This document shows positions 4,302-47,600 of a stretch of DNA of 64,000 nucleotides, piece by piece (the stretch's first letter is position 1; each line of letters begins with the position of its first letter). The DNA lies in the NCBI RefSeq assembly GCF_000143415.4, contig NW_003314372.1:325915-389914 (forward strand), in the 5' to 3' direction. Position numbers and translations under genes: made by a program. Source of the stretch: Selaginella moellendorffii. Taxonomy: Eukaryota > Plantae > Lycopodiophyta. The notes beneath the pieces are model-generated. The model did no database searches. It saw only the letters and a program-made list of their open reading frames with translations, and was not told the origin of the DNA.

Positions 4302-4485
4302 TGTTAGGGCATGGCCATTGAGAGAGTGAGAGAGAGAGGGAATATTCTAGTCCTTAGAATATTCCCCATCTTCCTTGTATAAAACCCTTGCCTCACAAGG
4401 GTAAAGGGGGGTATTTGCGAAGAGCATTGAAACATTTCTCGTGTTTGAGTGAGCGTTGGGGGAAGCACCCCTCCTTCCCCCAACA
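4302..4485. mobile_element. Family F short LTR-like element, 184 bp
   Basis: Termini TGTTAGGG...CCCCAACA. Aligns over its full length with 22007-22199. No TSD at this copy. Confidence 0.75.
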
Positions 4486-4496
4486 CTATGTCAAAG

Positions 4497-7209
4497 AAAT
4501 AGCCACCTCTGCAAATTTATTCTGGAAACGTTGGTAGTAACTAGCCATACCAAGAAAGCTGCGTAACTCAGCCATTGATTTTGGGGTAGGCTAATTCTCC
4601 ACCGCAGCCACCTTCCTTGGATCTATTTTGACACCCTTAGATATCACAATATGGCCTAGATATTCCACCTCTAACTTTCCAAACTCACATTTGCTCTTCT
4701 TTGCATAAAGTTTGCTGTCACGGAGTAACAAAAGAACCTTGTGCATATGCATCTTATGCTCCTCCATATTTTTGTTGAAAACAAGAATATCGTCTAAGAA
4801 AATCTTCACAAACTTATAAAGATAATGCCTAAATACCTCCGTTATCAACCGAGCAAATGTGGCTAGTACATTCATCAAACGAAATGGCATAACTATAAAC
4901 TCAAAATGTTTGAAGCTTGTGTTGAATGCCGTCTTGGAGATAGATGCATCATCCATTACAATCTGATGATATCTACTCCTCAGATCAATCTTGGTAAACA
5001 CTCGTACTTCACTAAGCTTATCTAAGATATCATTCACATGTGGCGTTAGCATCTTATCCTTCAATATCTTCTTGTTCAAAGCACGGTAGTAAATACATAT
5101 CCGTATTGAACCATCCTTCTTCTTCATAAGCAAGATTGAAGCACCAAATAGAAATTTACTTGGTTGAATAAATCCAAACTCAAATAACTCCTTGACTTGT
5201 CATTGAGCTTCTTGCTCCTCTGCATAACATAATTGAAATGGACGTCGATAAATTGGCTGCATCCCCGACTCCAATGTAATGCCATGCTCCACACCTCGTA
5301 ATGGAGGCAACCTATGAGGAAGTACAGATGGTTAAGTACATTGCATATTATTGCTTCTCCCCCACAAGTGCTTTGGTCCCTCAAGTCACGAACAAATAGT
5401 AAGTAACTTGAAAGTGTTTTTCCATTATGACAAGCCTGCTTTAAAGATGTAGTGGAGAGTATAACAACTAGAGGTTGAACTCCCTCTCCAAACCACATAT
5501 CTTTAACACCACCGTACTCTAGCTAGACATGCTTAATACTCCACTTTATCTCCAAATTCACCTTCACCAACCATGGCACACGATGGATATCTGTGAGATA
5601 AAAAATCTCCATAAGTGTGGTTTTGCCAACTAACACTTCTAGCCCCTTTACACAAGCATCAAAATGCTAAACAAAGGTAGCTGCACTTTCCATTGTGTAT
5701 GGAAGAACTCCTCGTGTGACCAGACCATGCTCCACAACAAACTTTGCCGAAACAAAGTTGTCATGGCTCCCACTATCCAGTAAAATCTGCACTAGACCAC
5801 TATGGAACACACCTTCAAGCATTAAGGCTGATTCACGAGTATCCTTGAGCTCTATCTTATTCCACACACAGTTGAGTTGATGAGCAATGATCAAAAGCTT
5901 CTTCCTCCAACCAGAATGGTCGTCTCTATCATCCTTATGCTACAAAGTTTGCAAATTTTTAGTATCTAACTTACCATCAGTAAATGATTGGCCATTTTTC
6001 TTGCCCTACTACTTGTTCTTCAACTGTGGACAATCAGCCTTGTAGTGTCCAAGCTCACCGCAATGATGACAACCCTGTCTATAATTCTTCACAAAGAAAT
6101 TCTACTTTTTGAACCCCTTTGCATCCGAAGTAGTGACCACCGACTTCAACTTGTGATACTTGTTCCCATCCTTGTGTCCATGGCGATCATCACGACGATT
6201 CTTAACAAAAGGACTCCACAAATGCTTGCAAGACTTGTGCTTATCATTGTCAAGTCGACAAGCCGCATCAAAGAGCTCCTCCAAACTCTTTGTAGGCTGC
6301 GAATGATGCAAGTGTTGCCACATGCTCTCACTATATAGGCCATTAATGAAGTAGGACTTGTTTTGATCTGGATCCTTCGTTAGAACACGACTAATCAAGC
6401 GAGTAAACTTCTCAATATAGTCCCCAAGCGTCATTTTCCCTTGCTGGAAATGTCGAAGTTCTATACGAACATTCTCCACGTCATAATGAGGGGAAAAATG
6501 TAAACGAAAAATAGCCTCAAACTCATCCATGGTAGACACTGGTGGTTTCTTATCCGCAACACAGGACTCCTCAAGCCAATTCCACCATCGAAGACCCGCA
6601 TCACGCAAAACCATCGGAATAGCCACTAAAGCCTCTACATTTGGAGTTCCCCTAGCAGCCAAGAACTTCTTCACATTGGCTAGCCAAGCGAGACACTCGT
6701 CCACACCACCATCACTGGAAAAGGTTGGAATCTTGAGTCGATCTACCAAAGGAGGCTTACTCGGAGTGCTACCCTGTCCAGCCTCGAGGGCCTCAACACG
6801 CCCATGCATGGTATCCATCATGCCATGCATCTCGTCTTGCATCTCTTGCTGATTTCGGTTAAGGCCTCACAGCTTATGAACCACATCTTGAATGGTCCAA
6901 ATCTTTGTAGCTTCGTTGGCACCATCTTCAGCACCACCATCGACAATAGGATTCCAGTGTTCAGCTTGGTTGGCCATCACAACTAATTTCTTTGATACTA
7001 GGATCCGGTGTGAAAAGACAGAGATCTAGTCTTCCTAGACTACGCTACACCTCATCTTGAGGTTCCTCACCACCTAACCACCCCCGAGCTACCTCAAAAG
7101 CTCCATTGTGAGCCTTAGGGTAGGTTAAGTCCCTTACCCTAACATGCCTTAATATACCCTTGAGCCTCCCTTTGACTGATGTTGACCATGTGGTCAAAGC
7201 TGCCACCAT
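4497..7209 (-). mobile_element. Family A copy A1, 3'-truncated (damaged 5' LTR, PBS, gag, protease, RT)
   Basis: LTR-homologous sequence ~7001-7209, gag ORF 6102-6842, protease ILLDSG at 5667-5894, RT ORF 4591-5133 with FLDD. Colinear with 41052-45943. Confidence 0.92.
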
Positions 7210-8389: not shown

Positions 8390-8842
8390 TGCCGGGATTA
8401 TAGTATTGTGGAATCATTAGGTGTTTATGACAATCAAGAAGTTGATTATTGGTTGGAGTTGTGGGAAAGTTGCTAATCTCATAACCCTTGTGTGGATAAG
8501 CTGAAGATTGACTTTTTTGTGATGAAGCTTTCTAGTGATGCTTCTTTGGAGTGGACGAACTACATCAAAACTAATACAAATCCATCTTATTAAAATGATT
8601 TGACAAAGGTTTTTTATGCTTCATTTATTAAGAAGTTTAATGAAATTGATCTTGCAAACCAACTACTAGAGATCAAGCAAGGGACTTTGTCTTTGGATGC
8701 CAATTTTGTGATATTTGCCTTAGTCTCATGAGCATCTATAATAGGCTATCAAAGGTGTAATGTTTTCTTAAAGGTTTGAGTTTAATGAATATGTAGTAGT
8801 AATTCAAAAAAAAATTCTAATGATGCTGATTGATGCTATCAC
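8390..8842 (+). pseudogene. Old degenerate retrotransposon gag fragment
   Basis: Manual translation gives VDYWLELWE...KLSSDASLEW...ASFIKKFNEIDLANQLLEIKQGTLSL, matching the Retrotrans_gag pattern. Multiple stops and frameshifts. Confidence 0.6.
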
Positions 8843-11800
8843 TGTTATGATCTGGTGCAAAAAGACAAAGATCTAGTCGCCCTAGACTATGCTACGCCAC
8901 CTCTTGAGGTTCCTCACCACCCAACCACCCCCAGGCTACCTCAAAAGTTCCACTGCACCGCCGCTCCACTGTGAGCCCTAGGGTAGGTTAAATCCCTTAC
9001 CCTAACATGCCTTAATATACCCTTGAGCCTCCCTTTGACTGATGTTGACCACATAGTCAAAGCTGGCGCCTAACAATTCTTCCCCCCCAACAAAGTCCTT
9101 ATCCAAAGGACGAGTTGTATCGGTGATCACCCTTTTTGGGGAACCTTGCTCAAGCTTCTGGTCCATCTTCCACAGCCGTATACACCAAGGAGGCATTGGG
9201 CCCATCACTCCGAGATAGTACACCTTTCAACTGGCTGACATAAAATACCAGATGAATTTTCACCCTAGCTGGCAGCCACACCCGATAAACCATTTTACCA
9301 ATGTGCTCCAACACTTCATATGGACTAGCATATCGATAGGAAAGTTTATCACTCTTCCCTTTCCGTAAAGGCACCAAGGTGTTCCGCCACTCACTTGACA
9401 GAAAGATCACTTGCACAAAGACAAGATCACCCACCTTATATTCCCAAAATTGGTGATGCTCATTGGCAAACTTCTCCACTCTATCCTGAGTTGCTTGCAA
9501 ATTCTGTTTGCACACCACTAGAATCTCATCAAGTTCTATGGCTAGATCAGTCGCCTTAGAATCAAGCTTATCTTGAACGTCCTTACTCAAATGCAATCCC
9601 AACTCCACCGCTATTTGAGGATGCCTTCCAAACATGGCAAAATAAAGACTTAGCTTGGTTCCACTGTGTTGGCTATTGTTGTAAGCAAATTGCACCAATG
9701 GAAGATATAAATCCCACTGTCCTTGCCTTTGACCAATGCTACAACGTAGCATATCCTCCACCACCTGATTCACACGCTCGGTTTGCCCATCTGTCTAAGG
9801 ATGATCTCCACTCAAGAGTTTCAAAGTCACTTGCATAGCCTTTGCAAAGCTTTTCCAAAATCCACTGATGAACTTTCAATCTTGATCATTAATGATGTCC
9901 TCCAGCAAACCAAAATCAGGAAAACCCTTCTCCAAGTAAACCACAGCCAAATCTGAGGTAGTGAAAGTCTTCTGAAGAGCCAACAACCGCACATACTTCG
10001 TCAACCGATCCACTATGACCCATACTTGCTCCTTTTGCCTCTGTGTTCATAGCAAACAAGTGATGAAGTCCATAGAGATACTACACCAATGGCTCTGAGG
10101 AATAGGTTAAGGTTGCAAAAGTCCCCCCGGCTTCTCCCGTGGCACCTTAACCCGCTGACAAAGCTCGCATGATTTACAATACTTGAGGATATCAGCCTTC
10201 ATATTCCTCCAATAAAAGTTGCGCTTAATCAACTCATACGTCTTCCTCCCCCCCAAAATGACCGGCCTCAAGACGATCATGATAGTGGAATAAAACTTGA
10301 GTAATTAACGCATCCACCCATGACAAATAGACACGGCCATTGTAATAGAATAGGATAAGGAAAGGGCCCTACAATTAAGTGATCACCCCTTTAGCCAGTT
10401 GGCTTAGGGTGTAAGGGATAGGATCCTAATATTGGTATCAGAGGAGTTGGTTGCGATGGCCGACCAAGCTAAACGCTGAAATCCTATTGTCAATGGTGGT
10501 GCCAACGATGGTGCCGACGAAGCTGCAGAGATTTGGACCATTCAAGATGTGGTTCATGAGCTGTGAGGCCTTAACCAAAATCAGCAAGAGATGCAAGATG
10601 AGATGCATGGCATGATGGATACCATGCATAGGCGTGTTGAGGCCCTCGAGGCTGGACGGGGTAGCGCTCCGAGTAAGCCTCCTTTGGTAGATCGACTCAA
10701 GATTCCAACCTTTTCTAGTGATGGTGGTGTGGATGAGTGTCTCGCTTGGCTAGCCAATGTGAAGAAGTTCTTGGCTGCTAGGGGAACTCCAGATGTAGAG
10801 GCTTTAGTGGCTATTCTGATGGTTTTGCGTGATGTGGGTCTTCGATAGTGGAATTGGCTTGAGGAGTCCTGTGTTGCGGATAAGAAACCACTAGTGTCTA
10901 CCATGGATGAGTTTGAGGCTGCTTTTTGTTTACAATTTTCCCCTCATTACGATGTAGAAAATGCTCGTACAGAACTTTGACACTTCCAGCAAGGGAAAAT
11001 GATGCTTGGGGACTATATTGAGAAGCTTACTCGCTTGATTAGTCATGTTCCAACGAAGGATCTAGATCAAAACAAGTCCTACTTCATTGATGGCCTACAT
11101 AGTGAGAGCATGTAGCAACACTTGCGTCATTCTCAGCCTACAAAGAGTTTGGAGGAGCTCTTTGATGTGGCTTGTTGACTTGACAATGATAAGCACAAGT
11201 CTCGCAAGCATTCGCGGAGTCCTTCTGTCGAGAATCGTCGTAATGATTGCCGTGGACACAAGGATGGGAACAAGCATCACAAGTTGAAGTCGGTGGTCAC
11301 TACTTTGGATGCAAAGGGGTTCAAGAAGCAGAATTTCTTTGTGAAGAATTATAGACAGGGTTGTCATCATTGCGGCGAACTTGGACACTACAAGGCTGAT
11401 TGTCCGCAGTTGAAGAACAAACAGCAGAACAAGAAGAATGGCCAATCTTCTTCTCATGGTAAGTCAGATACTAAAAAGTTGCAAACTATACAGTGTGAGC
11501 ATGACGAGAACAACCATTCCAGTCAGAGAAAAAGACTTTCGATCGTTGCTCATCAACTCAACTGTGTGTGGAACAAGATGGAGCTCGAGGATACACATGA
11601 ATCAGCTTTAATGCTGGAGGATGTGTTCTGTGGTGATCCAGTGCGGATTTTATTGGATAGTGGGAGCGATGATAACTTTGTTTGTTGTGGATCATGGCCT
11701 GGTCACATGCAGAGTTCTTCCATACATAGTGGAAGGTGCAGCTACCTCTGCTCAGCATTTCGATGCTTGTGTCGAGGGGCTGGAAGTGTTAGTTGGCAAA

Positions 11801-13959
11801 ACCACACTTGTGAAGACTTTTTATCTTGCAGATATCTATCATGTGGATCTCATTCTTGGGATGCCATGGTTGGTGAAGGTGCTTCCAGAGATAAAGTGGA
11901 GTATTAAGCATATCTCGCTAGAGTATGGTGGCGTTCAAGATGTGTGGTTTGGCAAGGGCATTCAACCACCAGTTGTTATGCTCTTTGCTACATCTTTGAA
12001 GCGAGCTTGTCATAATGGAAAAACGCTTTTGAGTTACTTGCTGTTTGTTCATAAGTTGGGGGACCAAGGCATGTGTGGGGGAGAAGCAGCAGTACAGGAT
12101 GTACTTGACAAGTTTTCTGATGTTTTTCCATCTGAACTTCCTCATGGGTTGCCTCTATTACGAGGCATGGAGCATGGGATTATATTGGAGCCGGGGATGC
12201 AGCCAATTTACCGATGTCCATTTCACTTAAGTTATGCGGAGGAGCAAGAAGTTCAACGACAAGTCAAGGACTTACTTGAGTTTGGATTCATTCAGCCAAG
12301 TAAGTCTCCATTTGGTGCTCCGGTCTTGCTTGTGAAGAAGAAGGACGGTTCAATGCGAATGTGTATTGACTACCACGCTTTGAACAAAAAGATAGTGAAG
12401 GATAAGATGCCAATGCCACGTGTGGATGATATTCTAGACAAGCTTGGTGAAGCACGAGTGTTTACCAATATTGATCTGAGGAGTGGATATCATCAAATTG
12501 CAATGGATGATGCATCTATCTCCAAGACGGCATTCAACACAAGCTTTGGACATTTTGAATTTACAGTTATGCCATTTGGTTTGACGAATGCACCAGCCAC
12601 ATTTACTCAGTTGATGACGGAGGTATTTGGGCGTTATCTTCATGAGTTTATGGAGATTTTCTTGGATAAATAAATATAATGATGTATAGGTAAAAATATT
12701 TTTTGAGTCTTGATGCAGCAAAAACTTGAATATGAAGCATTAGCTGACTTGTTCACTACCCTGTTGACCAGTGCTTTTATTAAAAAAATCTACGCCTTAG
12801 TGATTGTTAGGTTGACTATGTGGTCAACATTGGTCAAAAGGAGGCTCAAGGGTATATTAAGGCATGTTAGGGTAAGTGACTTAACCTACCCTAGGGCTCA
12901 CAGTGGAGCAATGGCGCAGTGGAGCTTTTGAGGTAGCTCGGGGGTGGTTGGGGTGAGGAACCTCAAGAGGTGGCGTAGCATAGTCTAGGGCGACTAGATC
13001 TCTGTCTTTTTGTGCCGGATCATAACATTAGTATTGGAGCCCAGTTTGAATCTCGTGGCTGACAAGTGGGGCAGGAATATTCTAAGGGAATATTCAACAT
13101 GGTGGATCTAGATGGAGAACTAAGGTTTGGTAGACCCTAAGAGAAGGACTATGGTGACTGGATCTAACAATGACAACGTAGAGAATCCCATCCATCAATG
13201 AGAATGGGGCTTCCATCTGGCCTTGCAAAGAGGCCACCTTAGCATCATGAGCCTGAGCATGCTCAACCAACTGCCCAAACTCGCTGACCACCTTACTCAA
13301 ATGATGACAAAATCGTGTTTATAACGTTGTCACATGGCGAACACGAGATAAAGCATCTACCACTACAGTTGCTTTTCTTGGACGATGTTCAATAGGAAAC
13401 TCCCCAAACTTCATGAGTTTGACCATCCAACGAGCTTGCCTAGTGTTCAACTCCTGTGTGAAAAGATACACAAGTGGTTTGTGATCTGTCAACACCACGA
13501 ACACTGCACCATAAAGATAGTGCCGCCATGTCCGTAAAGCATGAACAATAGAGAGTAACTCTTGCTCATATGTGGAATAGCGTTGCTCCGCAAAATTCAA
13601 AGTTCGACTCTCATATGCAATAGGCTATCCCTCTTGTATGAGAACTCGTCCCAGTGCATAACCACTCGCATCGCATGTCACCTTATAAGGTTTTGATGGA
13701 TCAGCAATGCGAAACACTGGAGTTTCACTCAACAATCGTTTCAGCGCCACAAAACTCTCCTCTTGTGGCTTCTTCCACTCAAATGGCACATTCTTGCCTA
13801 ACAACCCCGTCACCTCTGCAAAATTATGCTGGTAATGTTAGTGGTAACTAGCTATACCAAGAAAACTGCGCAACTCAGCCACTGTAGTCAGTGTATGCCA
13901 ATTTTCCACCACAGCCACCTTCCTTGGATTTGTCTTGACATCCTTAGATGTCACAATAT
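8843..13959 (-). mobile_element. Family A copy A2, 3' half (3' LTR 8843-9075, PPT, integrase to 10349, RNaseH/RT end 13178-13959), split by the 10350-13177 insert
   Basis: TG..CA LTR, PPT complement ATTCTTCCCCCCC at 9076, integrase ORF 9150-9773, RNaseH ORFs 13319-13813. The pol sequence resumes at 13178 where it stopped at 10349. Confidence 0.92.
10350..13177 (+). mobile_element. Chimeric insert: partial D LTR - PBS - A gag/PR/RT (to ~12667) - unrelated spacer - A LTR (12805-13027) - D interior - D LTR end remnant
   Basis: 10350-10431 matches the TRIM LTR (29331-29434). 10432-12667 matches the A interior (ORF 11621-12673). 13028-13158 matches the TRIM interior (29435-29566). Flanked by ATAGA/GTAGA. 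Confidence 0.85.
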
Positions 13960-16900
13960 TGTGAGACACAAAATCCTTAGGCCCCAAAGTGGAGCTGGAA
14001 AGGGTGCCACGTGGTAGTGGCTGAAGCGAAAGCCAAACAAGCGTGACCCGTTTGGACTAAAAGCTCCAACTTGGAAGGTCGAGAGCGGGAGTGGAACTCC
14101 CAACAAAGTGCTTGAGGAACAAGCACAAAGCGAGCAATAAGCGAGGCTCCAAAAAGGGACCCAAAAGGACCAACATATGACACGTGGAAGTGTCCGAGAT
14201 GGGGTCCGAGATGGACCAAGACGGAGTCCGAGATGGAGTCCGAGGTGGAGTCCAAGATGGAGTCCGAGATGGAGTCCAAAGTGGAGTCCAAGATGGAGTC
14301 CGAGATGGACCGAGATGGAGTCCGAGATGGAGTCCGAGATAGACCGAGATGGAGTCCGAGATAGACCGAGATGGAGTCTGAGATGGGGTCCAAAGTGGAG
14401 TCCGAGATGGAGTCCAAAGTGGAGTCTGAGATGGAGTCTGAGATGGAGTCCGAGATGGACCGAGACGGAGTCCGAGATGGAGTTCGAGATGGAGTCCGAG
14501 GTGGAGTCCGAGATGGAGTCTGAGATGGAGTCCGAAGTGGAGTCCAAGATGGAGTCCAAGATGGACCGAGATGGAGTCTGAGATGGACCCGAGATGGAAT
14601 CCGAGATGGAGTCCGAGAAGGACCCGAGATGGAGTCCGAGGTTGAGACTGAGACTGGGACCGAGACCAAGACCAAGACCGAGACCGAGACCGGGACCGAG
14701 ACCGAGACCGAGGCGAAGGCCGAGACCGAGCCCGAGTCTGAGTCTGAGTCCGAGTTCGAGTCCGAGTTCGAGTCTGAGAGGGTGAAAGCCCAAAGCGTTC
14801 GTCTCCCAGACCCTGGGGGGTTTGGTGAGCTCCAAAAGTATAGTAAGGGGGAGGACTGCAGTGGAGCCAGTTTGGCCAGGAAAGGGCAGTTTGGCCCAGG
14901 AAGGCCAGACCCAGTGTTGGGTGATGAACTGACCACTGGGAAGTCCAAGACTAGAGTGAATACGGACCGACAAGCAGGGTAGCTTGGTGAAGTGTTCAAG
15001 AGCCGGCTCTAGTTCCCCCGGGAGATCGACTAGCCGATGCTCCCAATCCAAGTGTGGGTTGCACTACCTACTTGGATACCAGGCGTGGCTCAACGGAACC
15101 TCGCTCTAAGCCCATGGCTAGAGCACCTAAAGGCGAAAGGTGGGGAGAGTACCTAGGTGGCTCGCATAAGGCCACAGTGTTCCGAAATGTTGTCCCAAAG
15201 GCCCAAACTGTGGAAAGGAAGAGGAGCAGTCCTCTGGGGTAGTGACCAAGGACACAGTCGTGTGGTGAGGAAGTCCCAGAGGACCATGGGACTTAGTGGT
15301 CGGGCCTGTGGGCCTCGATCCAGTGGTAGTGTTGGTGAACACGGCCATGGACAGTAAAGGGACTTGGTGGGGACCAGAAAAGGGACATTGGGGGAAGGCT
15401 ATTCCCCATGTCTGTCGGCATCCTAAGGATGCTAAGGAGTGGATCTGGGATGATCACTCATGAATGGATGGCCCAGTCTTTGAGGGACGGGACTGTGATG
15501 GAGGTGGTGTCAGACCATCGGTGTGACCAAGGTGAATGGGCATGGCATTAGCATAACGGGCTGATATGTTGGTGGTACTTTGGAGTGTCGGTCATGGGAT
15601 CGGTCACGTGGAGCACTTGGACCAAGTGCAAAGGTTGGGTGGCGGGGATGCCATTCTCGGGGCTAGCAAGCCCAAGTTTGAAATAGGACTTAACTTATGG
15701 AGGTTGTGAGTGAGACTCCTCCAATTGGTCGGAGGTGTGGTTAAGTGACTAAAGTAGAATGGAAAAATTAATCGCTTACAACTTGGTATCGGAGCTGTTC
15801 CTTAGTTCAACTTTTATTGGTGCTCAAGTATATCACCATTGATGTTGGCATTGGAAGGTCCTAGGAGTGGGCCTATCCTTGAGGAGTAGCATGTTGAGAG
15901 GACATATCTCTCCACTCAAGTTCATGCATGAACTTGGGCACGATATGGTGGATAGAAAAGGGCCAATAATAGAACAACTTTGGGATCTTGGGAACAGTAT
16001 AAGGTTTCCTTAGAGAGTTGAGGATGTGATCCAGATGAGCGTTTAATGCAGCAAATGGGCTAACGTAGTTGTGGTAAACAACTATAATTGGGATCACGGG
16101 AAAGATGTAGACTCCAAAATAATAAAGGAGTCACAAGATTACCCTCATATAGTTGAGGCCAGTGCTCATAACTTTGAGACCGGAATTAATGACCATGGGA
16201 GGTCAAATATAGGAGAGGACACAAGTCCTCAAAATGGTAGCTGAGGTTACCCTTGATAAATGCTGGAACAACCCAAGGAGTTGGGGATGTACTTAGAGGA
16301 TGAGTTGGTATTCTCATCACATGGACAAGTGGTCCTAAGAGGCAAAAGGTTGCCCCAAGAGAACAAATCAAGTGTTGGAGTAACACTTGCAAAGATGGTC
16401 CTTGTGAGTAGGACCTGAATACAAGAAGTTGTATTCCAGTGAGTTGGCACCTCAAAGGTAGGACCTCATGGGTCGTCGGATGACAAAGTCCAAAAAGCTG
16501 GATGATTCCAATAGAGTCAAGGAATAATCCTAAAGGATTGATGGAAGCATTTGGACTGAGGTGTGTGGTACCCCACGAAGGATGGGGGGGATCATAGGAT
16601 CCAAGGATGAGAACAGAGAGTATCTCATCGATGGCAAAATGTGCCATGTTAAAGTCGTGAGAAGGGTGTTCCCAAAAGAAAACAACTTTGAAACAAAGTT
16701 GTGTGTGACCTCTATGGTGCAGTGCTAATGGATGGTTGGCATGAGAAAGAGTGGTATTAGTCTTGGCAAAAACTTAAACACAAAGAAGAAGTGTCATAGA
16801 GGTAGGCTCGTGGAGCCGATGGTGTGGAGACACCAAATGTGCCAAGGTGTGATACCTTGAGGCTATGTTGGTGGGTTCATGAGAACCCCTTGCCAAAGGA

Positions 16901-17095
16901 ATCCCAATGGAAATGGGAATGGCATAGCCTAAGTTGCAGAGCATGCAGTTGGAGTGTGGTGACCCAGATAATGATGGAGGTGTGGAAGCACCAGCAATGA
17001 GTTGTAGGACTTGACAACTATGAGGCAACTAAGCAAGAGGTGCAAAATAATTGGTTAAACGGGTAGAAGGTAGCTACCCAAGCCTTCTTAATGGC
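13960..17095 (+). mobile_element. Family B copy: 5' LTR (13960-15780), PBS, first 1.3 kb of the non-coding interior
   Basis: TGTGAGAC...GCTTACA followed by ACTTGGTATCGGAGC (iMet-tRNA PBS). The interior is the reverse complement of ~60315-61624. Inserted into A2 pol. Confidence 0.9.
14192..14776 (+). repeat. CG-rich 12-mer/hexamer array in the B LTR
   Basis: (GGAGTCCGAGAT)n variants followed by GAGACC/GAGTCC hexamers. Confidence 0.95.
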
Positions 17096-17101
17096 ATTAT
17101 C

Positions 17102-18102
17102 GAGGTTGTGAGTGAGACTCCTCCAAGTGGTCGGAGGTGCAGTTAAGTGACTAAAGTAGAATGGAAAAATTAGTCACTTACAAGTCGGGCCTATGGGCCT
17201 TGATCTAGTGGCAGTATTGGCGAACACGGCCATGGACAGAAAAAGGACTTGGTGGGGACTGTAAATGGGATATTGGGGAAGGCTGTTCCCTATATCTGCA
17301 GGCATCTTAAGGATGCTAAAGAGTGGACCTAGGATGGTCACTCATAGATGGATGGGCCAATTTTTGAGAGATGGGACTGCGATGCAGGTGGTGTTAGACC
17401 ACCGGTGTGACCAAGGTGAATGGGCATAGCCTTAGCGTAACGGGTAGGTATGTTAGTGGTACCTTGGGGTGTCAGTAATGGGATCGGACACATGGAGCAC
17501 TTAAACCAAGTGTAATGGTTGAGTGGCATCGATGCCATTCATGGGGCTAGCAAGTTCCTAAGTCCAGAATAGGACTTACGGAGGTTGTGAGTGAGACTCC
17601 TTCAAGTGGTTGGAGGTGCGGTTAAATGACTAAAGTAGAATGGAAAAATTAGTCACTTACAAGTCAGGCTTGTGGGCCTTAATCCAGTGGTAGTGTTAGC
17701 GAACACGGCCATGGACAGAAAAGGGACTTGGTGGGGATTGTAAATGGGATATTGGGGAAGGTTGTTCCCTATGTCTGTGGGCATCTTAAAGATGCTAAGG
17801 AGTGGACCTAGGATGGTCACTCATAGATGGATGGCCCAGTCTTTTGAGAGACGGGACTACGATACAGGTGGTGTTAGACCACTGGTGTGACCAAGGTGAA
17901 TGGGCATGGCCATAGCATAACGGGTTGGTATGTTGGTGGTACCTTGGGGTGTCGGTCATGGGATCGGACATGTGGAGCACTTGGACCAAGTGTAATGGTT
18001 GAGTGGCATCGATACCATTCTTGGGGCTAGCAAGTTCCTAAGTCCAGAATGGGACTTATGGAGGTTGTGAGTGAGACTCCTCCAAGTGGTCGGAGGTGTG
18101 GT
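17102..18102 (+). repeat. ~480-bp tandem repeat (about 2.1 units) derived from the 3' end of the B LTR
   Basis: GAGGTTGTGAGTGAGACTCC at 17102, 17581 and 18061. The unit corresponds to ~15298-15780. Confidence 0.92.
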
Positions 18103-18596: not shown

Positions 18597-21500
18597 TTAT
18601 TTAGGTCAAAAGATATCCCTAAAGCATAATATCCACTGGATATAAAATCTCTGAAAATGACCAACTAAAATGGTATAATATTTGAATTTTTTTCTGACTT
18701 AATTGTCAATATTAAAATTCCACAAAATCTGTAAATTCAAATTTGTGAGTGATTTCAGTCAGGAAATGGATGGGTCAAAATCATTTCCATCCATAGCCTT
18801 TTCTGAAATCTCAGTTGGCAATATTTTAGATGAAACATTGCATTGATCTAGAAAAAAGCATTAGATATCAATCATTTTGTTTTCTCTAATAGAAAGCTAT
18901 CTGAAAATCCCCTAGTCACAAAGTCTAATACATTTAAGCAAAGCATGTCATACAGAAGGTTCTTGTTTGTTCTAAGAAAGAAAGGCATATAAAGGCCTGT
19001 GAGACTTGGATATGAATACATACAAAGGGAGATTTCCACCATCTTAGATTAAATTTTGAAAAAACACTTTTCTTAAGCTCCTCCAAAACCTACATCCAGG
19101 CTTTTGTGCAGTCTTGTGCATTGACAACATGATCAAAGCTCAGCTCTCCAGCTCACCCCTGCTTGTATAGGTGTGCCTGGCCAAAACCTCTAAAACAACT
19201 CAAGCACAAACTGAGATTATTGTTGGATATGATGAGCATTCGAGGATGGCAAGAGCAAAAATCCTATTGGCAACACTGAAGGGCTACAAGTTCTCACTTT
19301 GCCAGTGGAGAGAAGTGCAGTGCAACAGTGAAGTGGACTAGCTGTTTTGTTTCTTTTTGGACAGGCAGGAAACCCACCTTGGTGAGGAAGAGCGATGTCA
19401 CCCCATTGACAACATGACACTCTCTCTCATAGATAAAATGTGAAGCTCACTCTTATAGATGATCATTAGGAGCTCCTTGTGCACCAGTAAAATCTTGAGT
19501 GAGAAGTGCTATGATTTAAGTCTTTACTTTTTATACCAGCAGAAACATTCTTTTCTGTCATTGTCTCAGAAAACCATCATGAAGGATGGTTGAGAATCAT
19601 CTCACCAAGTATGGTAGCTCCATTGCAGCAAAGTGATCTTATTTGGCAATTCATAATCCAAACTCATGTCTTTAGGAAATCAGAAAACTTAATGTGAGGC
19701 AGCTATAGAAAAAGAAAACAAAGAAAGTTTCTATCTCCAAAAGTCTATGGAGTGGAGAGGTCATGATCAAGATGCTCATGAAATAGTGCATGACTTAAAA
19801 ATTAGAATTGGCAAAAGCTTACCATCAAGACAGCAAGATTCAACCACTCACCCATAGTTGCTCCCGATCCTCCTCCCTAGTGCCAGCTATGGAGCTTTAG
19901 AGCTGGTGCCCATTGTTATGATCCGGCACAAAAAGACAGAGATCTAGTCTCCCTAAACTATGCTACGCCACCTATTGAGGTTCCTCACCACCCAACCACC
20001 CCCAAGCTACCTCAAAAGCTCCACTGCATTGCCACTCCACTATGAGCCCTAGGGTAGGTTAAGTCTCTTACCCTAACATGCCTTAATATACCCTTGAGCC
20101 TCCCTTTGACCAATATTGACCATGTGGTCAAAAATGACACCTAACAATTCTTCCTCCCATTAAATTCCTTGTTCTAAGGATGAGTTGTACCAATGATCAC
20201 CCTTTCTAGGGAAACCCTGCTTAAGCTCTTGGTCCATCTTCCACAACCGTATACATCAAGGAGGCATTAGGCTCATCACTCCAAGATAATACACCTTTCA
20301 ACTGGTTGACATAAAATACTAGATGAATTTTCACCCCAGCTGGTAGCTACACCTAATAAACTGCTTTACCAATGCCCTCCAGCACTTCATATGGACCAGC
20401 ATATTGATGGGAAAGTTTGTCACTTTTCACTATTTGTAAAGGCACCAAGGTGTTCTACTGCTCACTTGATGGAAAGATAACTTATACGAAGACAAAATCA
20501 CCCACCTTATATTCTTGGAATTTGCGATGCTCATTAAACTTCTCTACTCTATCCTGAGCTGCTTGCAAATTCCGTTTGCACACCACCAGAATCTCATCAA
20601 GTTCTGTAGCCAAATCAGTTGCCTTGGAATCAAGTTAATCTTGAACGTCCTTACTCAAATGCAATCCCAACTCCACCACTGTTTGGGGATGCATTCCAAA
20701 TATGGCAAAGTAAGTACTTAGCTTGGTTTCACTATGTTGGCTATTATTGTAAGAAAATCGCACCAGCTGAAGATATAGATCCCATTGTCCATGCCTTTGA
20801 CCAATGCTACAACGTAGCATATCCTCCACCACTTGGTTCACATGCTCAGTTTGCCCATCTGTGTAAGGATGATCTCCACTCGAGAGTTTCAAAGTCACTT
20901 GCATAGCCTTCGTAAAGCTTTTCCAAAATCCACTTGTGAACTTTGAATCTTGATCACTAATGATGTCCTCTGGCAAACCAAAATCAGGAAAAACCTTCTC
21001 CAAGTAGGTTGCAGCCAAGTCTGGGGTAGTGACAGTTTTCCGAAGAGCTAAGAACTACATATATTTCGTCAACCAATTCACTATGACCCATACTTGCCCC
21101 TTTTGCCTCTGTGTGCGTGGCAAACAAGTGATGAAGTCCATAAAGATACTACACCAATGACTCTGAGAAATAGGTAAAGGTTACGAAAGTCCTCTCAACT
21201 TCTCCCGTGGCACCTTAACCTACTGATAGAGCTCACATGATTTATAATACTCGAGTCTTCATATTCCTCCAATAAAAATTGTGCTTAATCAACTCATACA
21301 TCTTCTTCCCCCCAAAATGACCAGCCTTTAAACGACCATGATAGTGGAATAAAACTTGAGTAATTAATGCATCCACCTATGGCAAATATACATGGCCATT
21401 GTAGTAGGGAATCCCATCCACCAATGAGAAATGAACTTCCATTTAGTTGGGCAAAGAGGCCACCTGAGCATCTTGAGCCTAAACATGCTCAACCAACTGC

Positions 21501-22006
21501 CTAAACTCATTGACCATCTTACTCAAATGATGACAAGACCGTGTTTGGAATGCCGTCAAAGGATAAACACGAGATAAAGCATCTACCATTACATTTGATT
21601 TTTCCAGATGATGCTCAATAGAAAACTCTCCAAACTCCATGAGTTTAACTATCCAACGAGTTTCCTTAGTGTTCAACTCCTTTTGTGTGCAAAGATACAC
21701 AAGTGGTTTGTGATCCGTTAACACCACAAACACTACATGATAAAGATAGTGCTGCCACGTCTGCAAAGCGTGAACAATAGAAAGTAACTCTTGTTCATAT
21801 ATGGAATAGCAAAGTTCAACTCTTATATACAATAGGCTGTCCCTCTTACATGAGAACTCTTCCCAATGCATAAGCATTCACATCACATATCACCTCGTAA
21901 GGTTTTGATGGATTAGCAAACCTTCAGCCTTGTAGTATCCACGCTCACCACAATGATGACAACTTTGTCTAAAATTCTTCACAAAGAACTTTTGCATTTT
22001 TTACCC

Positions 22007-22199
22007 TGTTAGGGCGTGGCCACTGAGAGAGTGAGAGAGAGAGGGAATATTTTGGTCCTCAAAATATTCCCCATATTCCTTGTATAAAACCCTTGCCTCA
22101 CAAGGGCAAAGGGGGGGGGGAGGCATTTTTCCAAAGAGCATCGAAGCATTTCTCATGTTAGAGCGAGCGTTGGGGGAGGTGCCCCTCCTTCCCCCAACA
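22007..22199. mobile_element. Family F solo-LTR-like insertion in A3 gag
   Basis: TGTTAGGG...CCCCAACA, with ACCC duplicated on both sides relative to the empty site in A1 (~6110). Confidence 0.8.
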
Positions 22200-22391
22200 A
22201 CCCCTTTGCATCTGATGTAGTCACCATAAACTTCAATTTGTGGTGCTTGTTCCCATCCTTGTGTCCATGGCAATTATCACGACGATTCTCAACAGAAGGA
22301 CTCCGCGAATGCTTGTGAGACTTGTGCTTGTCATTGTCAAGTCGACGAGCTGTATCAAAAAGCTCCTCTAAACTCTTTATGGGCTGAGAAT

Positions 22392-22751
22392 TGTCAAGAA
22401 TCCCCCAATTCTTGCCCATTCCTGACTCTTGCTGGATTCCTGACTTGCAGACTATATTCCTGACTCTTGAGACACTTCCCTATTCCTCACTCTTTGATTT
22501 TCCATATGATTCCTGAGTCTTGAGCCACATTCCCGATGATGATGTGGTGCCTCCTCGACCTTAGCTATATTTAGGCTGTCCTCGATCCAAGGGTGGTGGA
22601 GCTTCATCAACGTATAGTATATATAGGTTAGCCTTGTTCCATTTCTCCACAATATGAATCAACGGCAATCTAAGGCCTCTTCTTCATTTCCACTAGCTTT
22701 TCTCTTTGTCTTCTGCATTTTCCAGTATTGATCTTGTTGGGGGTCTTGACA
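22392..22751. mobile_element. Family G solo LTR, 360 bp
   Basis: TGTCAAGAATCCCCCAA...TTGGGGGTCTTGACA inverted termini, perfect 5-bp TSD AGAAT, TATA-like run near 22613-22626. Confidence 0.88.
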
Positions 22752-25700
22752 AGAATGACGTAAATGTTGCCACATGCTCTCACTATGAAGGCCATCAATG
22801 AAGTAGGACCTGTTCTGATCTAGATCCTTTGTTGGAACATGGATAATCAAGCAAGTAAGCTTCTCAATATAGTCCCCAAACATCATTTCTCTTGCTGAAA
22901 ATGTTAAAGTTTTGTGCGAGCATTTTTTATGTAGTAATGAGGGGAAAAACGTAAATGGAAAGCAACCTCAAACTCATCCATGGTAAACACTGATGGTTTC
23001 TTATTTGCAACACGAGACTCCTCAAGCCAATTCCACCACTAAAGACCTGCATCATGCAAAACCATTGGAATATCCACTAAAGCCTCTACATCTAGAGTTC
23101 CCCTAGCAGCCAAGAACTTCTTCATATTAGGCTAGCTAAGCAAAACACTTGTTCACACCATCATCATTGGAAAAGGTTGGAATTTTGAGTCAATCTACCA
23201 AGGAAGGCTTACTTGGAGTGCTACCACGTCCAACCTTGAGTGCCTCAACACGCTCACACATGGTATTCATCATGTGATGCATCTTGTCTTGCATCTCTTG
23301 CTGATTTTGATTAAGAGCTTATAGCTCATGAACAACATTTTGAATGATCCAAACCTCCACAGCTCCATCAACACCATCATTAGCACCACCATCAATAATA
23401 GAATTCCAGCGTTTAACTTGGTCGGCCATCACAACCAACTCCTTTGATACCAATGTTATGATTTGGCACAAAAAGACAAAGATCTAGTCTCCCTAGACAA
23501 TGCTACACCACCTTGAGCCTCCCTTTGACCAAAGTTGACCACTTGGTCAAAGCTACCACCTAACACCTACAGGCCCTGGCCATGGTCATGCAAGACATGG
23601 CTGTAGAATGGGCTGGCTTGTAGCTAGAAGATTTTAAACCTAGTAAAGTAAAAAAAACTAAAAAATAGCATTGAACCCTGAAGGAGAAGGAGGGAGCTTT
23701 TGTGCCAAGATTGCACACATTTCTTGCTGGGAAGAAATGTCAAAGAAAAGTTCAAAAAGAAACTGTTGTATAAGTTCCTTGGCATCCCATATATTTGCTA
23801 GTTGGATCACTGGAAGGCTCTTGTCCAGTTAAAGCTTTATGACCAATATGAAACAAGAGAGTCAATCTTAGAAAAACTATTTTGAGACTTTCATAAAACC
23901 TATGTGCTTTGAAGGCCGATGATAATCCAGCCCTTGATAACATTGTCCAAGAGAAATTCTGTGAGCAAGAAAAGGTTTGTTGAAAACTCTAGCAAAGAAA
24001 GCTACAATTCAGAAGAGAGCAACATCTTACCTATTGATTTGTTTACAAAGTCGAGCTCCACCACATTGGGAATAAACTTCCCACTCAACAGCACAAGAAA
24101 ATAATCTCTATGTTATTGTCCCAGCTGAGAAGATGAAGGACTCAGCAAGAGTGTCATTGAGGATCTGTAAGTGAATTCAAATATGAACATCTTGCAAGAA
24201 ATGAAAGGAAAAAAACCTCAAAATTGTGCAAAGAGATTGATATGAGTGATGATCTCATAAGAATGTAGTGAAATCCCTTGTACAACATTCTCAAGAATAG
24301 AGGAAAGTGAAAATTAATAGGTAAAATATATCTAGATGGTGGATTCCAGCGAAACAATTGCCTGAATCCCCTATTATGAAGGCTAGAAGAAATCAGCATG
24401 GAGGAGGAAGGCAATGGGTACTCTTTGAGTGCTTGTGTCCCAAAAAACAAAAAAAAATAAAACATGTGATATCCAATGTAAATTTTTTTTCCACGTGTCA
24501 CTATCCATACCATCCTTTTTTTAGTTTTGAATCTAGATTAGAATATATTGGAGTAACTCCAATGGAGTAAGTCTGGAAACTATATCTCTCCCACCTTGAA
24601 AGATATGGAATAGCCAACAGCCCCACTCAACCTTTTTGATAAAGAACCTTAGGTAGTTCTTGACTTCTGTATCCACCAACCTAGTCATGCCTTCCCATTT
24701 AGGAAATGTAGGCTGGGCTGAACTCAAGCTGTTTACTCAAGTAAATGAACAAGCTCATCCAGAATTTTTCTGTGAACTTTGAATCTCAGTGCTACACTCT
24801 GGGCTACTGAATCCTCTCACAATGCCCATCCCCAGGGGAATTTTCCCTGCCCTCTTTTGTCTTGCCATCATCTTATGGTTTTCTAGAACCACCACCACGA
24901 CCATCCAGATTCATTCATTTCCATCCTGAGTACAATCTTGTAGTTTTCCTTCAAGAAGGTAGGATATTTGATCCTTGGACTGAGAAGGGCTCTCCTATAC
25001 TTTGGGTTCAGGTTTCACTTAGGTGCATTGATGTAAGTCTCTTAATCATAAACTCCTCAAAATACTGAAAATTGAGCAATCTCCTTGCTTCCATACCTTG
25101 AGTTCATGATAGGCCACATTTATGTGGTTGTCCAATCTAGGTCTGCACTTGCTAGGTATGCTTTCACAAGGAGGGTCATATTTTCAGTTGTCCAACTGTC
25201 CCACAAACTTCATATCTTGGACCCATTAAATCACCTAGTGTTTGGCTATCCTCCCCACAACTTTAGCCCTGATAGGTAGACATATCCAAAATTATTGCTG
25301 CTAATCCCTCTTAGGTAAGGTCATTAAGACCACAAGGGGGACCAACTCTGATTAACATTATCATTTACTGATCTGTTCTAGGAGTCCCTACATTCTGTGT
25401 TTCTACCCATTCCTATACAAAGGAGGAGTTGGTCTGTCAGTCCATTCCCTCTTGCCTTCCACATTGAAATGACGTTCCAATTTGGCAACACATTTCATAA
25501 GCTCTTCAATCACTTTGAGCCTTTGTAGAATTTGAGTGATTTGGCAATATCACTCCTTGATCATTCACCATAATCTCCTACAAAGTTGTAGAACCTAAAT
25601 TACCAATGGTAAAATAATCAAGATAGTATATCTATATCCACTATCTATCCACTATGATAATTTCCCCTTCCTAGTCCTAATGTAGGGTGTCTGGTTGCAC

Positions 25701-29300: not shown

Positions 29301-31140
29301 TGAAAAACTATAGCCCTATGCAAGCTTTGTTGTTAGGCACTATGTCAGGATAATAGGATATAGAAAGGGCCCTACAATCAAGTAATCACCCCTTTTACTA
29401 GTTGGCATAGGGTGTAAGGGATAGGATCTTAACATTGGTATCAAAACCCAATTTGATTCTCATGGCTAACAAGTGGGGCAAGAATATTCTATAAGAATAT
29501 TTAACATGGTGGATCTAGAGGGAGAACCATGGTTTGGTGGACCCTAAAAGAAGGACAATGGTGACCAAAGGGTGGTCTAAGTATGATTGCAGACGATCAT
29601 TCCCTAGCGAGGGGAGGATTGTTAGGCACTAGATTAGGATAATAGGATAAGAAAGGGCCTTACAATCAAGTGATCACCCTTTTAGCTAGTTGGCATAGGG
29701 TGTAAGAGATAGGATCCTAACACTCATGCCCTTAGATATCTTAACTATGTGGCTAGAGTGAGGTTTTGATGAGCTATGCCAAGTATCCAAGTAGGTAATG
29801 CCACCCACATTTGGATAGAGAGTATCAACCATTCAATCTCTTGGGGGAACTAGAGTTGGCTCTTAAACACTTCATTGAATTACTTTACTTGTCCATCCAT
29901 ATTCACCTTAGCCTTGGACTTTTCAGTGGTTATTTAATGACTCACCACGTGGGTATAACCTTCCTTAGTCACACTAGCCTTTCTTGGCAAAATAAATTCC
30001 ACTAGAGTCCTCCCTCTATTATCCTTTTGGAACTAACCAAACCCCCCACGGTCTAGAAGATGATCACTTTAGGCTTTCACCCTCAAACTTAGACTCGGAC
30101 TTAGACTCAGACTCAAACTTGGACTTTGTCCCGGTCTTGGTCCCGGTCCTAGTCTCAATCTTGGTCTCAGTCTTAGCCTTAGTCCCCATCTTCAGACTCC
30201 TTCTCAGACTTGGTCCCAACACTTTTATATATTATGACACTTATCATATGTCAGTCCTTCTTAAGTCCTTTTCTAAAGACTCATTCACTAATTGCTTCAT
30301 ACTCATTCCTCAAGCACTTTGTTTAGAGTTCCACTATTACTCTCAACTTTCGGAGTTATATCTTTTTGGTCCAAATCTGTTACATTTGTTGGACTTCCAT
30401 TTTAACCACTACCATATGACACACTTCTGACTCCACNNNNNNNNNNNNNNNNNNNNNNNNNNNNNNNNNNNNNNNNNNNNNNNNNNNNNNNNNNNNNNNN
30501 NNNNNNNNNNNNNNNNNNNNNNNNNNNNNNNNNNNNTTCCCATCCTAGGGAGTTCCTTACTAAGGCCACTATCATCCTCTCCCTTATTTTGTGCCAATCT
30601 TAGCACTCTACCCACCATATAGTAAGAAGTTTTCTCCTTTAGACTTATTCATAGCTCATATCTATTTTCTAAAACTAGTTTCATCTACCTCAATAATTGG
30701 GTTTTACCTTAGGATCTCCTAATCTTGTACTTCTACTCATTTATTAGGTTACTTAGGTCTTATTACCCTTTAAATCCATAATTTATACTAGGGCTAATTA
30801 TGGCCCTATCACTAACTACATTGCTACTCCATTTCTTGGAGTTTTTAGCTTTCACTAAATTGAAACACTTGGGAATTCCATCCTTTAGAAACTTATTACA
30901 TTTTCTATATATTTGTTAGTAGTTTTTTGCCTAACTTATTGTTTGAATTCCTTTCAATAGTTTCTTGAGCCCATTCTTGGCCATTAATATTTTGCTCCTA
31001 TCCTTTAATCATTTACACTAGGATCACTACCTTTATACTTGGGGTATTTTTTTGTTCCACAACAAAAGCTTTGCTTTGATATTTTAGGTTCATACTATTG
31101 AAGGTCTTGTTGCACTATATCGACAAGCTCTTTGGCCTCT
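26354..31140 (-). mobile_element. Cluster of old, CpG-decayed family B sequences: partial LTR 26354-26925, LTR 26926-28398, 3' interior, nested LTR from 28720, interior resuming after the gap
   Basis: TGTAAG(T/G)GACTAAATTTT-type LTR ends at 26354, 26926 and 28720. Colinear with 55659-58400. Two N gaps. Confidence 0.82.
29331..29722 (+). mobile_element. TRIM (family D), 392 bp
   Basis: Direct terminal repeats 29331-29434 and 29620-29722 (TGTTAGG...TAACA), PBS TTGGTATCA, PPT GAGGGGAGGA, 185-bp non-coding interior. Confidence 0.93.
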
Positions 31141-45943: not shown

Positions 45944-46430
45944 GATATAGTCTTCATATCTTGTATATCTTTGAAGTTTGAAAGAACAATTTTGTTGCTT
46001 CATCAATCTTTTACAGTCTTTAAAGTCTTTTTTCAGTGTGAGGAAAATTTTTCTTGAGTGTGTTGAGTCTTGAGTGTCAAGAATTTTTCTTGAGTATCAA
46101 GAAATTTCCCAACTGTCGAAACCTTGAGTGTTCTTGAAGGACAGTTGTAACCACTTTGATTTTTATAGAGATATGTGTATTGATCTTCTGCCATTTCCTA
46201 TTGAATTGGGTAGTCTTTGTATTTTGAGAAATCATATGGAGAGCTTTGCCATCTTCTTCCTATTGTCTTGTCTTTGGAGTAGTCTTGGTGTTTTTTTTTA
46301 TCATTTTCTTGTTGGGATTTTACTTCTTTTTGTGATGTATCCTATCCCACCATGGTCGCTAGTGAAAACTAGGTAGAATTGTTTCTACTAGACGATTATA
46401 TATGAATGTAAGAGAGAATTTGTTGAAGAT

Positions 46431-47600
46431 GTTTATGAAAAAGAAAGATGGATATATATGCATGTATATAGACTACTGGTTGCTGAACAAGTATACAAAG
46501 AAGAACAAGTATCCTTTACCAAGGATTGAGGACATATTTGATAGGTTGGGAAAGGCAAAATATTTCTTGAGGATTCACCTAAGGTTTAGATACTACTAAA
46601 TCAAGTTAGCAAAGAAAGATGTCGAGAAGACAACTTGTTAGACAAGGTATGGAAGTTTTGAATTTTTAGTGATGCCCTTTGGGCTATGCAATATATCAGC
46701 AATGTTTTCAATGCTGATGGACCATTTTTTTGTACCCTATCTAGATCATTTTGTCATTGTATATATTGATGACATCCTGATTTACAACAAGATGCTAGAA
46801 GAGCATGCCAAACACTTGACGAAGGTGTTTGAAAAACTAAAGGAACACAAGTTGTATGCTAAAAAGAGCAAATGTGACTTTTCTTAATAAAAGGTAAAGT
46901 TTCTCAAGCATATGGTGGGCAAAGATAGGCTCAAGATAGATCCTAAGAAGGTTCAAGTGATTTTTGGAGCTATGTAACTACTACCAAAAGTTTATCAAAC
47001 ACTATTTAAAAGTAACCCTACCTTTAATGGACCAAATGGAAAAAGGGAAAATGGTATATACAGCGGAATGCAAAGTGGCATTTATCCACCTCAAAGGGAA
47101 TTTGAGGAAAACTCTCATGTTAGCATTACCAGACTTTGCTAAAGACTTTGAGGTAGAAATAGAAACTTCAAACTTTGTATTGGGTGTAGTTTTGAAGCAA
47201 AAAAACTATCCAATGGTGTTCTTCTTGAAGAAATTAGACAAAGCTTAGTGAAAGTGGCCTACTCACAAGAAGAAATTATTTGTGTTGGTCAAGGTGCTCA
47301 AGAAGTGGCAATACTACATTGGAAGACACTTCAAAGTTTACACGAATAATGTGGCAATGAAACACTTTTTATCACAACCTGACCTGCGAGGAAAATAGGG
47401 TCAGTGGGCCAATGCTTTGGCCGTGTTTGATTGCAAGATTCTGTATAAACCTAGAAAGAGCAACATTATGGCAGATGCTCTAAGTCAAAAAGTAAGCTTG
47501 AAGTTGGCAATATCTAATATGACAATAACCTTTTGGGATGATGTGCAAATAGTGTATGAGAATGATAGTCTAACATAAGAAGTGTTGCTAAGGAACCAAG
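46431..47600 (+). pseudogene. Old RT-RNaseH fragment related to family C
   Basis: KKKDG...KKNKYPLPRIEDIFDRLGKAKYF, VYIDD, LALPDFAKDFEVE. Its start overlaps the end of the C1 RT sequence. Confidence 0.88.

Follow-up and report, generated by a model that had tools for sequence, protein, structure and literature searches.

A 64,000-nucleotide stretch of the genome of the lycophyte Selaginella moellendorffii (RefSeq assembly GCF_000143415.4, contig NW_003314372.1, positions 325,915 to 389,914 of the forward strand; hereafter the window, numbered from its first nucleotide) contains a decayed insertion of ~2.8 kb, at 10350-13177, in which two retroelements are joined twice, and reciprocally. One is a terminal-repeat retrotransposon in miniature (TRIM), designated TRIM-D, and the other is a Ty3/gypsy long terminal repeat (LTR) retrotransposon, designated family A. 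From left to right, the block consists of a truncated TRIM-D LTR, a primer-binding site (PBS) with the leader, gag, protease, and reverse transcriptase (RT) N terminus of family A, a 138-nt spacer, a complete family A LTR, and a PBS with the TRIM-D interior. Because the tRNA primer site that A and D have in common is the exact location of both joins, copies of the two elements probably met during reverse transcription. To the fuller reading, in which PBS-guided strand transfer between A and D during reverse transcription was followed by chromosomal entry of the product as broken cDNA, we assign about an even chance. One locus neither proves a meeting during reverse transcription nor names the helper of the TRIM. 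The map on which these statements are based comes from self-comparison of the window, which is dense with broken LTR retrotransposons, and from base-level alignment.

The block interrupts A2, a minus-strand copy of family A (8836-13959, where it is cut off), in the region of the integrase zinc-binding domain; mapped on the reference copy A1, the insertion point falls inside the open reading frame (ORF) carrying Integrase_H2C2. On the left, 8836-10349 comprises the 3' LTR and integrase region of A2 up to the insertion point (93.7% identity to A1 44448-45950), and on the right A2 continues through the RNase H/integrase region at 13178-13959 (89.7% identity to A1 43659-44452). The flanking stretches 9800-10349 and 13178-13700 are collinear with A1, with the near-identical duplicate of A1, and with a third copy, A3. 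Separate origins of the two flanks were ruled out: their pattern of relatedness to A1 and A3 is the same on both sides, and they therefore derive from one copy.

Within the block, whose element-derived parts all lie on the plus strand, the TRIM-D LTR (10350-10431) starts at LTR position 23 and has a D-type terminus. The window has one other TRIM-D (29331-29722), and the identity of the block LTR to its two LTRs is 88-91%; for the stretch 10349-10440 it is 89-91%. A 27-nt pattern describing the D LTR end occurs three times in the window with zero occurrences expected, and a metagenome scan for the D LTR end returned 0 matches. The family A portion (10444-12666) spans the leader, gag, the zinc knuckle, protease, and the N-terminal three-quarters of RT, inside which it is cut off. 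It is 91.3% identical to A1 41286-43519, and the longer alignment of 10421-12666 with A1 41272-43519 gives 90.5% identity over 2.26 kb. Only six indel events separate 10444-12666 from A1 at ~9% divergence; stop codons are present, and the Pfam matches are zf-CCHC and RVT_1, the latter over positions 1-151 of 205. The AT-rich spacer (12667-12804; 138 nt, 30% G+C) is unique in the window. The complete A LTR (12805-13027), which runs from TGTTAGG to an A-type end, is 90-92% identical to the LTRs of A1, A2, and A3 and 82-92% identical to six other A LTRs, and it has a 9-nt deletion right after its start. The TRIM-D interior that follows (13040-13158) includes a hairpin and is 87.4% identical to 29447-29565 with no indels, and the block closes with an ambiguous 19-nt tail (13159-13177). 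An original prediction, made from the sequence alone, had placed a D LTR at 10350-10431 before a PBS and A gag-pol, and an A LTR at 12805-13027 before a PBS and the D interior. The first combination was recovered by self-comparison, alignment, and the Pfam domains zf-CCHC and RVT_1, and the second by the alignment of 13040-13158 (87%). The unrelated DNA that it had noted in place of the A 3' half and polypurine tract (PPT) corresponds to the 138-nt spacer.

The two parents are quite different elements. A1 (41052-45943, plus strand, 4.9 kb) has LTRs of ~228 nt at a Kimura two-parameter (K2P) distance of 0.072, lies within a perfect 5-bp target site duplication (TSD), GATAT, and carries stop codons. 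Pfam domains in family A follow the order Retrotrans_gag, zf-CCHC, RVT_1, RT_RNaseH, Integrase_H2C2, and rve; with this domain order, LTRs, a PBS, and a 5-bp TSD all present, family A is a Ty3/gypsy LTR retrotransposon. All A copies in the window are broken, with stop codons. The A 5' ends other than that in the block all carry A LTRs, that of A1 being complete and those of A0 and A3 being 5'-truncated or partly deleted. The A copies at 4491-7207 and 19914-23550 are heavily rearranged; A0 consists of a 5' LTR and 5' half only, and A3 has a ~1.7-kb internal deletion, a solo LTR of another family (E), and a 360-bp foreign piece.

The reference TRIM-D (29331-29722, plus strand, ~392 bp) is made up of two 104-nt LTRs (90% alike, K2P 0.107), a T spacer, a PBS that we take to be of the initiator-methionine type, a 186-nt interior, and a PPT, and it has no ORF. 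Element D is accordingly a TRIM: shorter than 1 kb, with short LTRs, a PBS and a PPT, and non-coding. A Cassandra- or Helenus-type unit (5S or tRNA) in D was ruled out, as Rfam gave no match (no 5S unit) and ARAGORN found no tRNA gene. The sequences flanking TRIM-D, TTTGT at 29326-29330 and CTCAT at 29723-29727, match at two of five positions, with the three differences all being transitions, and a related empty site was too diverged to confirm a target duplication around this element. Both D copies have, in their interiors, a 9-bp hairpin formed by two self-complementary GAATATTC octamers (13075-13095 and 29482-29502), which may be a dimerisation or packaging signal.

The two elements meet at two family junctions. 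At the first (J1, 10427-10443, plus strand), where D switches to A, the last D-diagnostic base is at 10426 and A-diagnostic bases begin at 10444, with no indel relative to either parent. At the second (J2, 13023-13039, plus strand), where A switches to D, the last A-diagnostic base is at 13022 and D-diagnostic bases begin at 13040, again with no indel. Both switches are confined to one 17-nt stretch common to A and D, identical at J1 and J2, which comprises the last 5 nt of the LTR, a single T, and 11 nt of the PBS. The TGTTAGG starts, GGATCnTAACA ends, and 1-nt LTR-PBS spacer that the two elements had been said to have in common are all present. Similarity between A and D was found only at the PPT/U3 border (20/25) and over the U5 end of the LTR, the T, and the PBS (18/19); neither the inner parts of the LTRs nor the sequence past the PBS gave a significant match. 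The D leader had looked by eye to be homologous to the A leader/gag start, but neither free nor anchored alignments gave this significance.

The positions of the two breakpoints are not due to chance. The end of U5, the T, and the first PBS nucleotides are where the growing minus strand and plus-strand strong-stop DNA have their free 3' ends during reverse transcription. As the similarity between A and D is limited to LTR-border signals, we infer that the switches were guided by homology at the natural 3' end of reverse-transcription intermediates. Two chromosomal routes to the same parts were rejected. Nested insertion, of A into D or of D into A, was ruled out by the seamless LTR/PBS joins, because it would need insertion at the exact LTR/PBS border together with a precise deletion. 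Unequal crossing-over at the PBS was ruled out on logic, since J1 and J2 would then fall on different products. To judge from the structure, neither process can give J1 followed by J2 in cis.

A further junction lies at the start of the A LTR. This LTR begins exactly at the U3 border, TGTTAGG, and is preceded by AT, the dinucleotide found in front of U3 in A as well as in D. Deletion endpoints placed at random would fall at the exact A LTR start in ~0.2% of cases, and the border with its AT looks like the expected 5' end of unprocessed plus-strand DNA that was joined to filler. In total, three of the four internal junctions of the block coincide with natural ends of reverse-transcription intermediates. 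The spacer to the left of this border (12667-12804) contained no identifiable PPT, and comparisons with the rest of A in a plain, a purine/pyrimidine, and a G=A-collapsed alphabet all failed to show similarity. The A part of the block stops 140 nt short of the truncation of A2 itself, close to the 138-nt length of the spacer, and the two stretches are unrelated. The spacer is not the missing 140 nt between A1 coordinates 43519 and 43659, to which it has no similarity on either strand, and its derivation from G-to-A/C-to-T hypermutated A or from a mutated pre-PPT region was not significant.

The block entered A2 as a unit. It is flanked by ATAGA on the left (10345-10349) and GTAGA on the right (the first 5 nt from 13178), which differ by one transition. 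The intact copies A1, its duplicate, and A3 have GTAGA once at the insertion point, and the A2 flanks overlap by these 5 nt, as the prediction that the block interrupts A2 between the two pentamers had implied. A four-of-five match at this fixed place has a chance probability of ~0.016, and ATAGA/GTAGA is a true 5-bp target duplication. This single duplication flanks the whole complex, and its length equals that of the TSD of family A (GATAT around A1).

The ends of the block are not those of an LTR retrotransposon. Canonical TG...CA termini are lacking: the left end is D LTR position 23, the first 22 nt being missing, and does not read TG, and the right end is ...ACAAC. The sequence at the right, 13159-13177, can be aligned in two ways. 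In one, it is a 10/11 look-alike of the D LTR end plus 8 extra nt; in the other, it is collinear with D interior 29573-29591 after a 7-nt deletion. The two alignments score equally, and neither beats shuffled sequences (p = 0.12). The remnant of the D terminus that had been proposed here, GGATCTAACA, does occur at 13160-13169, but its identity as an LTR terminus is insecure. A third, 3' D LTR is not established by the sequence, because the tail aligns equally well as D interior, and the five-part order ending in a D LTR that had been drawn from it hangs on this 10-nt look-alike.

Seven of the last eight nucleotides of the tail recur as ATGACAA at 10320-10326, in the left flank 25 nt upstream of the block. 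The post hoc chance of such a recurrence is ~0.02-0.05, and the repeated heptamer hints at templated filler. The left end is preceded by an AGGAT motif that resembles a PPT/U3 border, and one might speculate that it is the mark of aberrant plus-strand priming. Small indels are rare in these copies, with the six events per 2.2 kb at 9% divergence corresponding to ~0.001 per site. Given this rarity and the non-LTR ends, the ends are probably original features of the inserted DNA, and the chimera was probably free DNA before it was inserted. The non-canonical ends, which the original prediction had listed as a side caveat, would thus be more central than that, and the insertion was probably not a canonical integrase event. 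The truncated ends and the filler are features of end-joined cDNA capture, which would be marked as well by the absence of a regular TSD; here a 5-bp duplication is present.

We suggest the following course of events. The A and D genomes would have recombined before insertion, most likely in one virus-like particle, when a free 3' end made on the template of one family annealed to the PBS of the other and was extended. In a first route, the D minus strand, having reached its PBS, would anneal to the PBS of a co-packaged A RNA, copy the U5 and R of A, jump to the 3' R of A, and copy the U3 and interior of A. Ordinary plus-strand transfer of D strong-stop DNA would then complete a single cDNA with the order D LTR, A interior, A LTR, D interior, and D LTR. 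In a second route, the plus-strand strong-stop DNA of each family would be transferred to the minus strand of the other, and the two reciprocal LTR-swapped cDNAs so produced would later have been joined head to tail. In this second route, which is the one put forward in the original prediction, the exact A LTR border would be an expected free end, and the first route would also place a plus-strand start there; the two are not separable. In either case, broken or end-eroded DNA would have entered the integrase-coding region of an older A copy, with the A half cut inside RT and joined through the 138-nt filler to a DNA end at the exact start of the A LTR. The intermolecular plus-strand transfer between co-packaged cDNAs that had been proposed originally accords with two reciprocal junctions at the LTR end and PBS, but it is only one of several routes to the order of parts. 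The same order could come from minus-strand PBS invasion giving a three-LTR cDNA, from recombination of cDNAs or circles after their completion, or from a permuted circle that was inserted anew.

Several observations weigh against an origin by PBS-guided transfer and capture of broken cDNA. The case is a single old locus, ~9-14% diverged from its relatives, and its A part is without the 3' half and PPT, while a third LTR cannot be demonstrated, so that the full product of the first route is not seen. The interiors of family A are mosaics of one another, and that of the block is nearer A0 over the first 1 kb and nearer A1 afterwards, which suggests recombination within family A; with this mosaic and an LTR tree that lacks resolution, a single parent for the A LTR and A interior of the block is not demonstrable. 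A true 5-bp duplication combined with non-LTR ends is predicted neither by integrase action nor by simple end joining. Finally, recombination of finished cDNAs at the DNA level, at the same 17 nt, gives identical junctions.

This last point is the basis of a rival explanation in which finished double-stranded A and D cDNAs, or LTR circles, recombined in the nucleus by single-strand annealing or microhomology-mediated joining at 17-19 bp, and the resulting linear or circular heterodimer, opened by a single break near the D PPT/LTR start, was taken up at a chromosomal break. It predicts no difference in the order of parts or in the junction windows, and the non-LTR ends and 138-nt filler are typical of end joining. 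Under the D-interior alignment of the tail, moreover, only ~51 nt of the D map separate the ends of the block (29591 versus LTR position 23), as expected of a circle cut once and slightly resected. However, 17-19 bp is very short for homologous exchange, of which two, or one reciprocal, would be needed at one spot; the exact A LTR border with its AT is left unexplained, and end joining is not expected to give a 5-bp duplication. We regard nuclear recombination as unlikely. It is quite unlikely, in our judgment, that the locus is not itself the record of a recombination event, i.e., that both hybrids are ordinary multi-copy families or that the block was copied from a chromosomal donor as filler in break repair. 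Truncation at both ends would suit a copied fragment, truncated and rearranged elements abound in the window, and the spacer could be the genomic flank of an element with an A LTR and a D interior, with AT as part of its TSD. Against this, the other A 5' ends in the 64-kb window have A LTRs and the only other D has D LTRs, it would be remarkable for two unrelated reciprocal hybrids to occur head to tail at a distance of 138 nt, and donor and target have no homology by which copying could be guided.

Canonical integrase insertion, whether of a complete D-ended three-LTR heterodimer or of a TRIM-D into which, once resident, an A circle was incorporated at the PBS, would make the irregularities of the block a matter of later decay, among them the absence of 22 nt at the left, the loss of a 3' D LTR, and the spacer. 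The 5-bp duplication of family-typical length, the 10/11 match of the tail to the D LTR end, and the large internal deletions in neighbouring copies, such as that of ~1.7 kb in A3, are all in keeping with it. It would, however, need a deletion from the exact first base of the LTR and an 8-nt insertion right after the last, with the duplication spared, which is very unlikely at ~0.001 indels per site, and also a deletion ending exactly at the A LTR start. We consider the chances of this explanation poor. An assembly artefact, in which the short PBS stretch led to the joining of reads from different A and D copies, has a minute probability. Possible artefacts do exist in the window in the form of duplicated segments, 99.4-99.9% identical, beside N gaps. 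The common stretch of 17-19 nt, however, is far below any read length, the copies differ by ~9% or more, so that collapse does not arise, and the block has private substitutions relative to every other copy. No assembly gap occurs within 14 kb of the block, and there is none between 8000 and 27000.

Parts of this structure have precedents. In the block, the first LTR is truncated, both interiors are incomplete, the middle LTR is present, and a third LTR is at most a 10/11 look-alike. Three-LTR complexes within single families, with TSDs, have been ascribed to template switching (Sabot & Schulman 2007, PMC1950507), and tandemly arrayed TRIMs are known (Gao et al. 2016, PMC4717578; Yin et al. 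2014, PMC4079214). Like the block, these have two interiors with a middle LTR and one 5-bp duplication around the whole, so that they were inserted as a unit, and their proposed origin is likewise the copying of two RNAs in one particle. Their partners, however, belong to the same family and are joined through R or LTR homology, whereas the block combines a TRIM and a 4.9-kb gypsy element that look unrelated and switches between them at the PBS. The block further departs from them in having no demonstrable LTR on its outer 3' side, two incomplete cores, and ends other than LTR termini.

LTR swapping before integration (bioRxiv 10.1101/452573) and inter-family recombinants ascribed to cross-packaging (review PMC6894440) have been described as well. 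In cases of LTR swapping, as in the block, one element's LTR sits on another's interior, and integration is taken to have followed the exchange. The elements involved are related, have matching LTR pairs, and were amplified as families, whereas the block holds both reciprocal products in one insertion, has no matching LTR pair, and gives no sign of replication of the chimera. Du and colleagues (Plant Cell, in 2010, as cited in PMC6894440) reportedly also found LTRs exchanged between autonomous elements and their non-autonomous partners. In sugar beet, TRIM copies with extra LTRs from other families have been ascribed to recombination or template switching (PMC13570524); in the parts of that account available to us, the chimeras are TRIM-with-TRIM, breakpoints are not mapped to the PBS, and no TRIM/coding-gypsy chimera is reported. 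The rice pair OsajLTRA10/OsajRetroS10 links a coding element and a TRIM through a duplicated 25-nt segment of LTR end and PBS, located at the coding/TRIM breakpoint (Gao et al. 2016, PMC4717578). Unlike the block, its partner LTRs are 97% identical and it has no internal LTR, and its authors read it as a deletion giving rise to a TRIM, not as a fusion.

In terms of entry into the chromosome, the block can be compared with yeast, in which Ty1 cDNA is captured at chromosome breaks. Ends that are not LTR termini, filler, and a possible templated 7-nt patch at one junction are features that such capture and the block have in common, whereas a family-typical 5-bp target duplication is not expected of it. 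We found no description in the literature of a chimera in which a TRIM and a gypsy element are reciprocally joined, both times at the PBS.

Whether A is the helper of D is a separate question, to which the original prediction had given an affirmative answer that goes too far. A and D have in common both LTR termini, the 1-T spacer, the PBS, the PPT border, and the TSD length. The TGTTAGG start, however, is also found in family E, and a PBS of the initiator-methionine type is also found in the unrelated family R1. The GAATATTC palindrome, with five sites in the window versus 1.2 expected, occurs in the E LTR and the D interior and not in A. By sequence, then, the hairpin points to the E-LTR family and not to A. 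Among 289 TRIM subfamilies, larger relatives have been found for 11, of which four encode full retrotransposases, and the LTRs of the pairs described there are 79-98% similar (Gao et al. 2016, PMC4717578). Neither LTR similarity of this kind nor a common leader or packaging region was found for A and D. Family A or a close relative is thus a plausible candidate for the helper of D, and no more than a reasonable one. Family E itself is represented in the window by two solo LTRs (4302-4485 and 22007-22199; 184-193 bp, 85% alike), which start with TGTTAGGGC and end with CCCCCAACA. One lies inside A3 and the other adjoins the truncated end of A0, and each contains two GAATATTC palindromes, which elsewhere in the window are present only in the TRIM-D interior.

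Other repeats in the window were recorded alongside the block. Family R1 (15291-18102) has three direct copies of a ~480-bp repeat. A 1.4-kb interior lies between copies 1 and 2, copy 1 is followed by a C spacer and the PBS-like TTGGTATCGGAGC, and copies 2 and 3 meet head to tail, resembling tandem LTRs or a 2-LTR junction. Arrays of a 12-bp tandem repeat (unit GTCCGAGATGGA) occur at 14192-14500, 49684-50170, 56660-57330, and 62640-63060, inside a repeated element, "X", that adjoins several truncated A copies. Two pairs of segments (43047-47933 and 50770-55658; 55659-57065 and 61625-63031) are 99.4-99.9% identical and lie 6-8 kb apart, each adjoining runs of 100-151 N (51838-51988 and 57066-57165); these are either very recent segmental duplications or assembly/haplotype artefacts.

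The mobilising element of most TRIM families is not known, and a chimera whose two joins fall exactly at the ends of reverse-transcription intermediates is a physical, if indirect, sign that a TRIM and a particular gypsy family were copied at one and the same place and time. The present case, one old and broken locus, is a lead and not a result. As a tentative generalisation, it is possible that TRIM and gypsy helper RNAs are routinely co-packaged in this lycophyte, and that PBS-guided transfer between them yields LTR-swapped or three-LTR heterodimer cDNAs that are sometimes captured in broken form. Counting such fossils genome-wide could turn the helper question into bookkeeping, and it would also show swaps of LTRs between families. 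If co-packaging is indeed routine, PBS-joined fossils would amount to a genome-wide record of which autonomous family mobilises which TRIM, and the transfers that produced them would be a route by which TRIMs gain new LTRs and change helpers.

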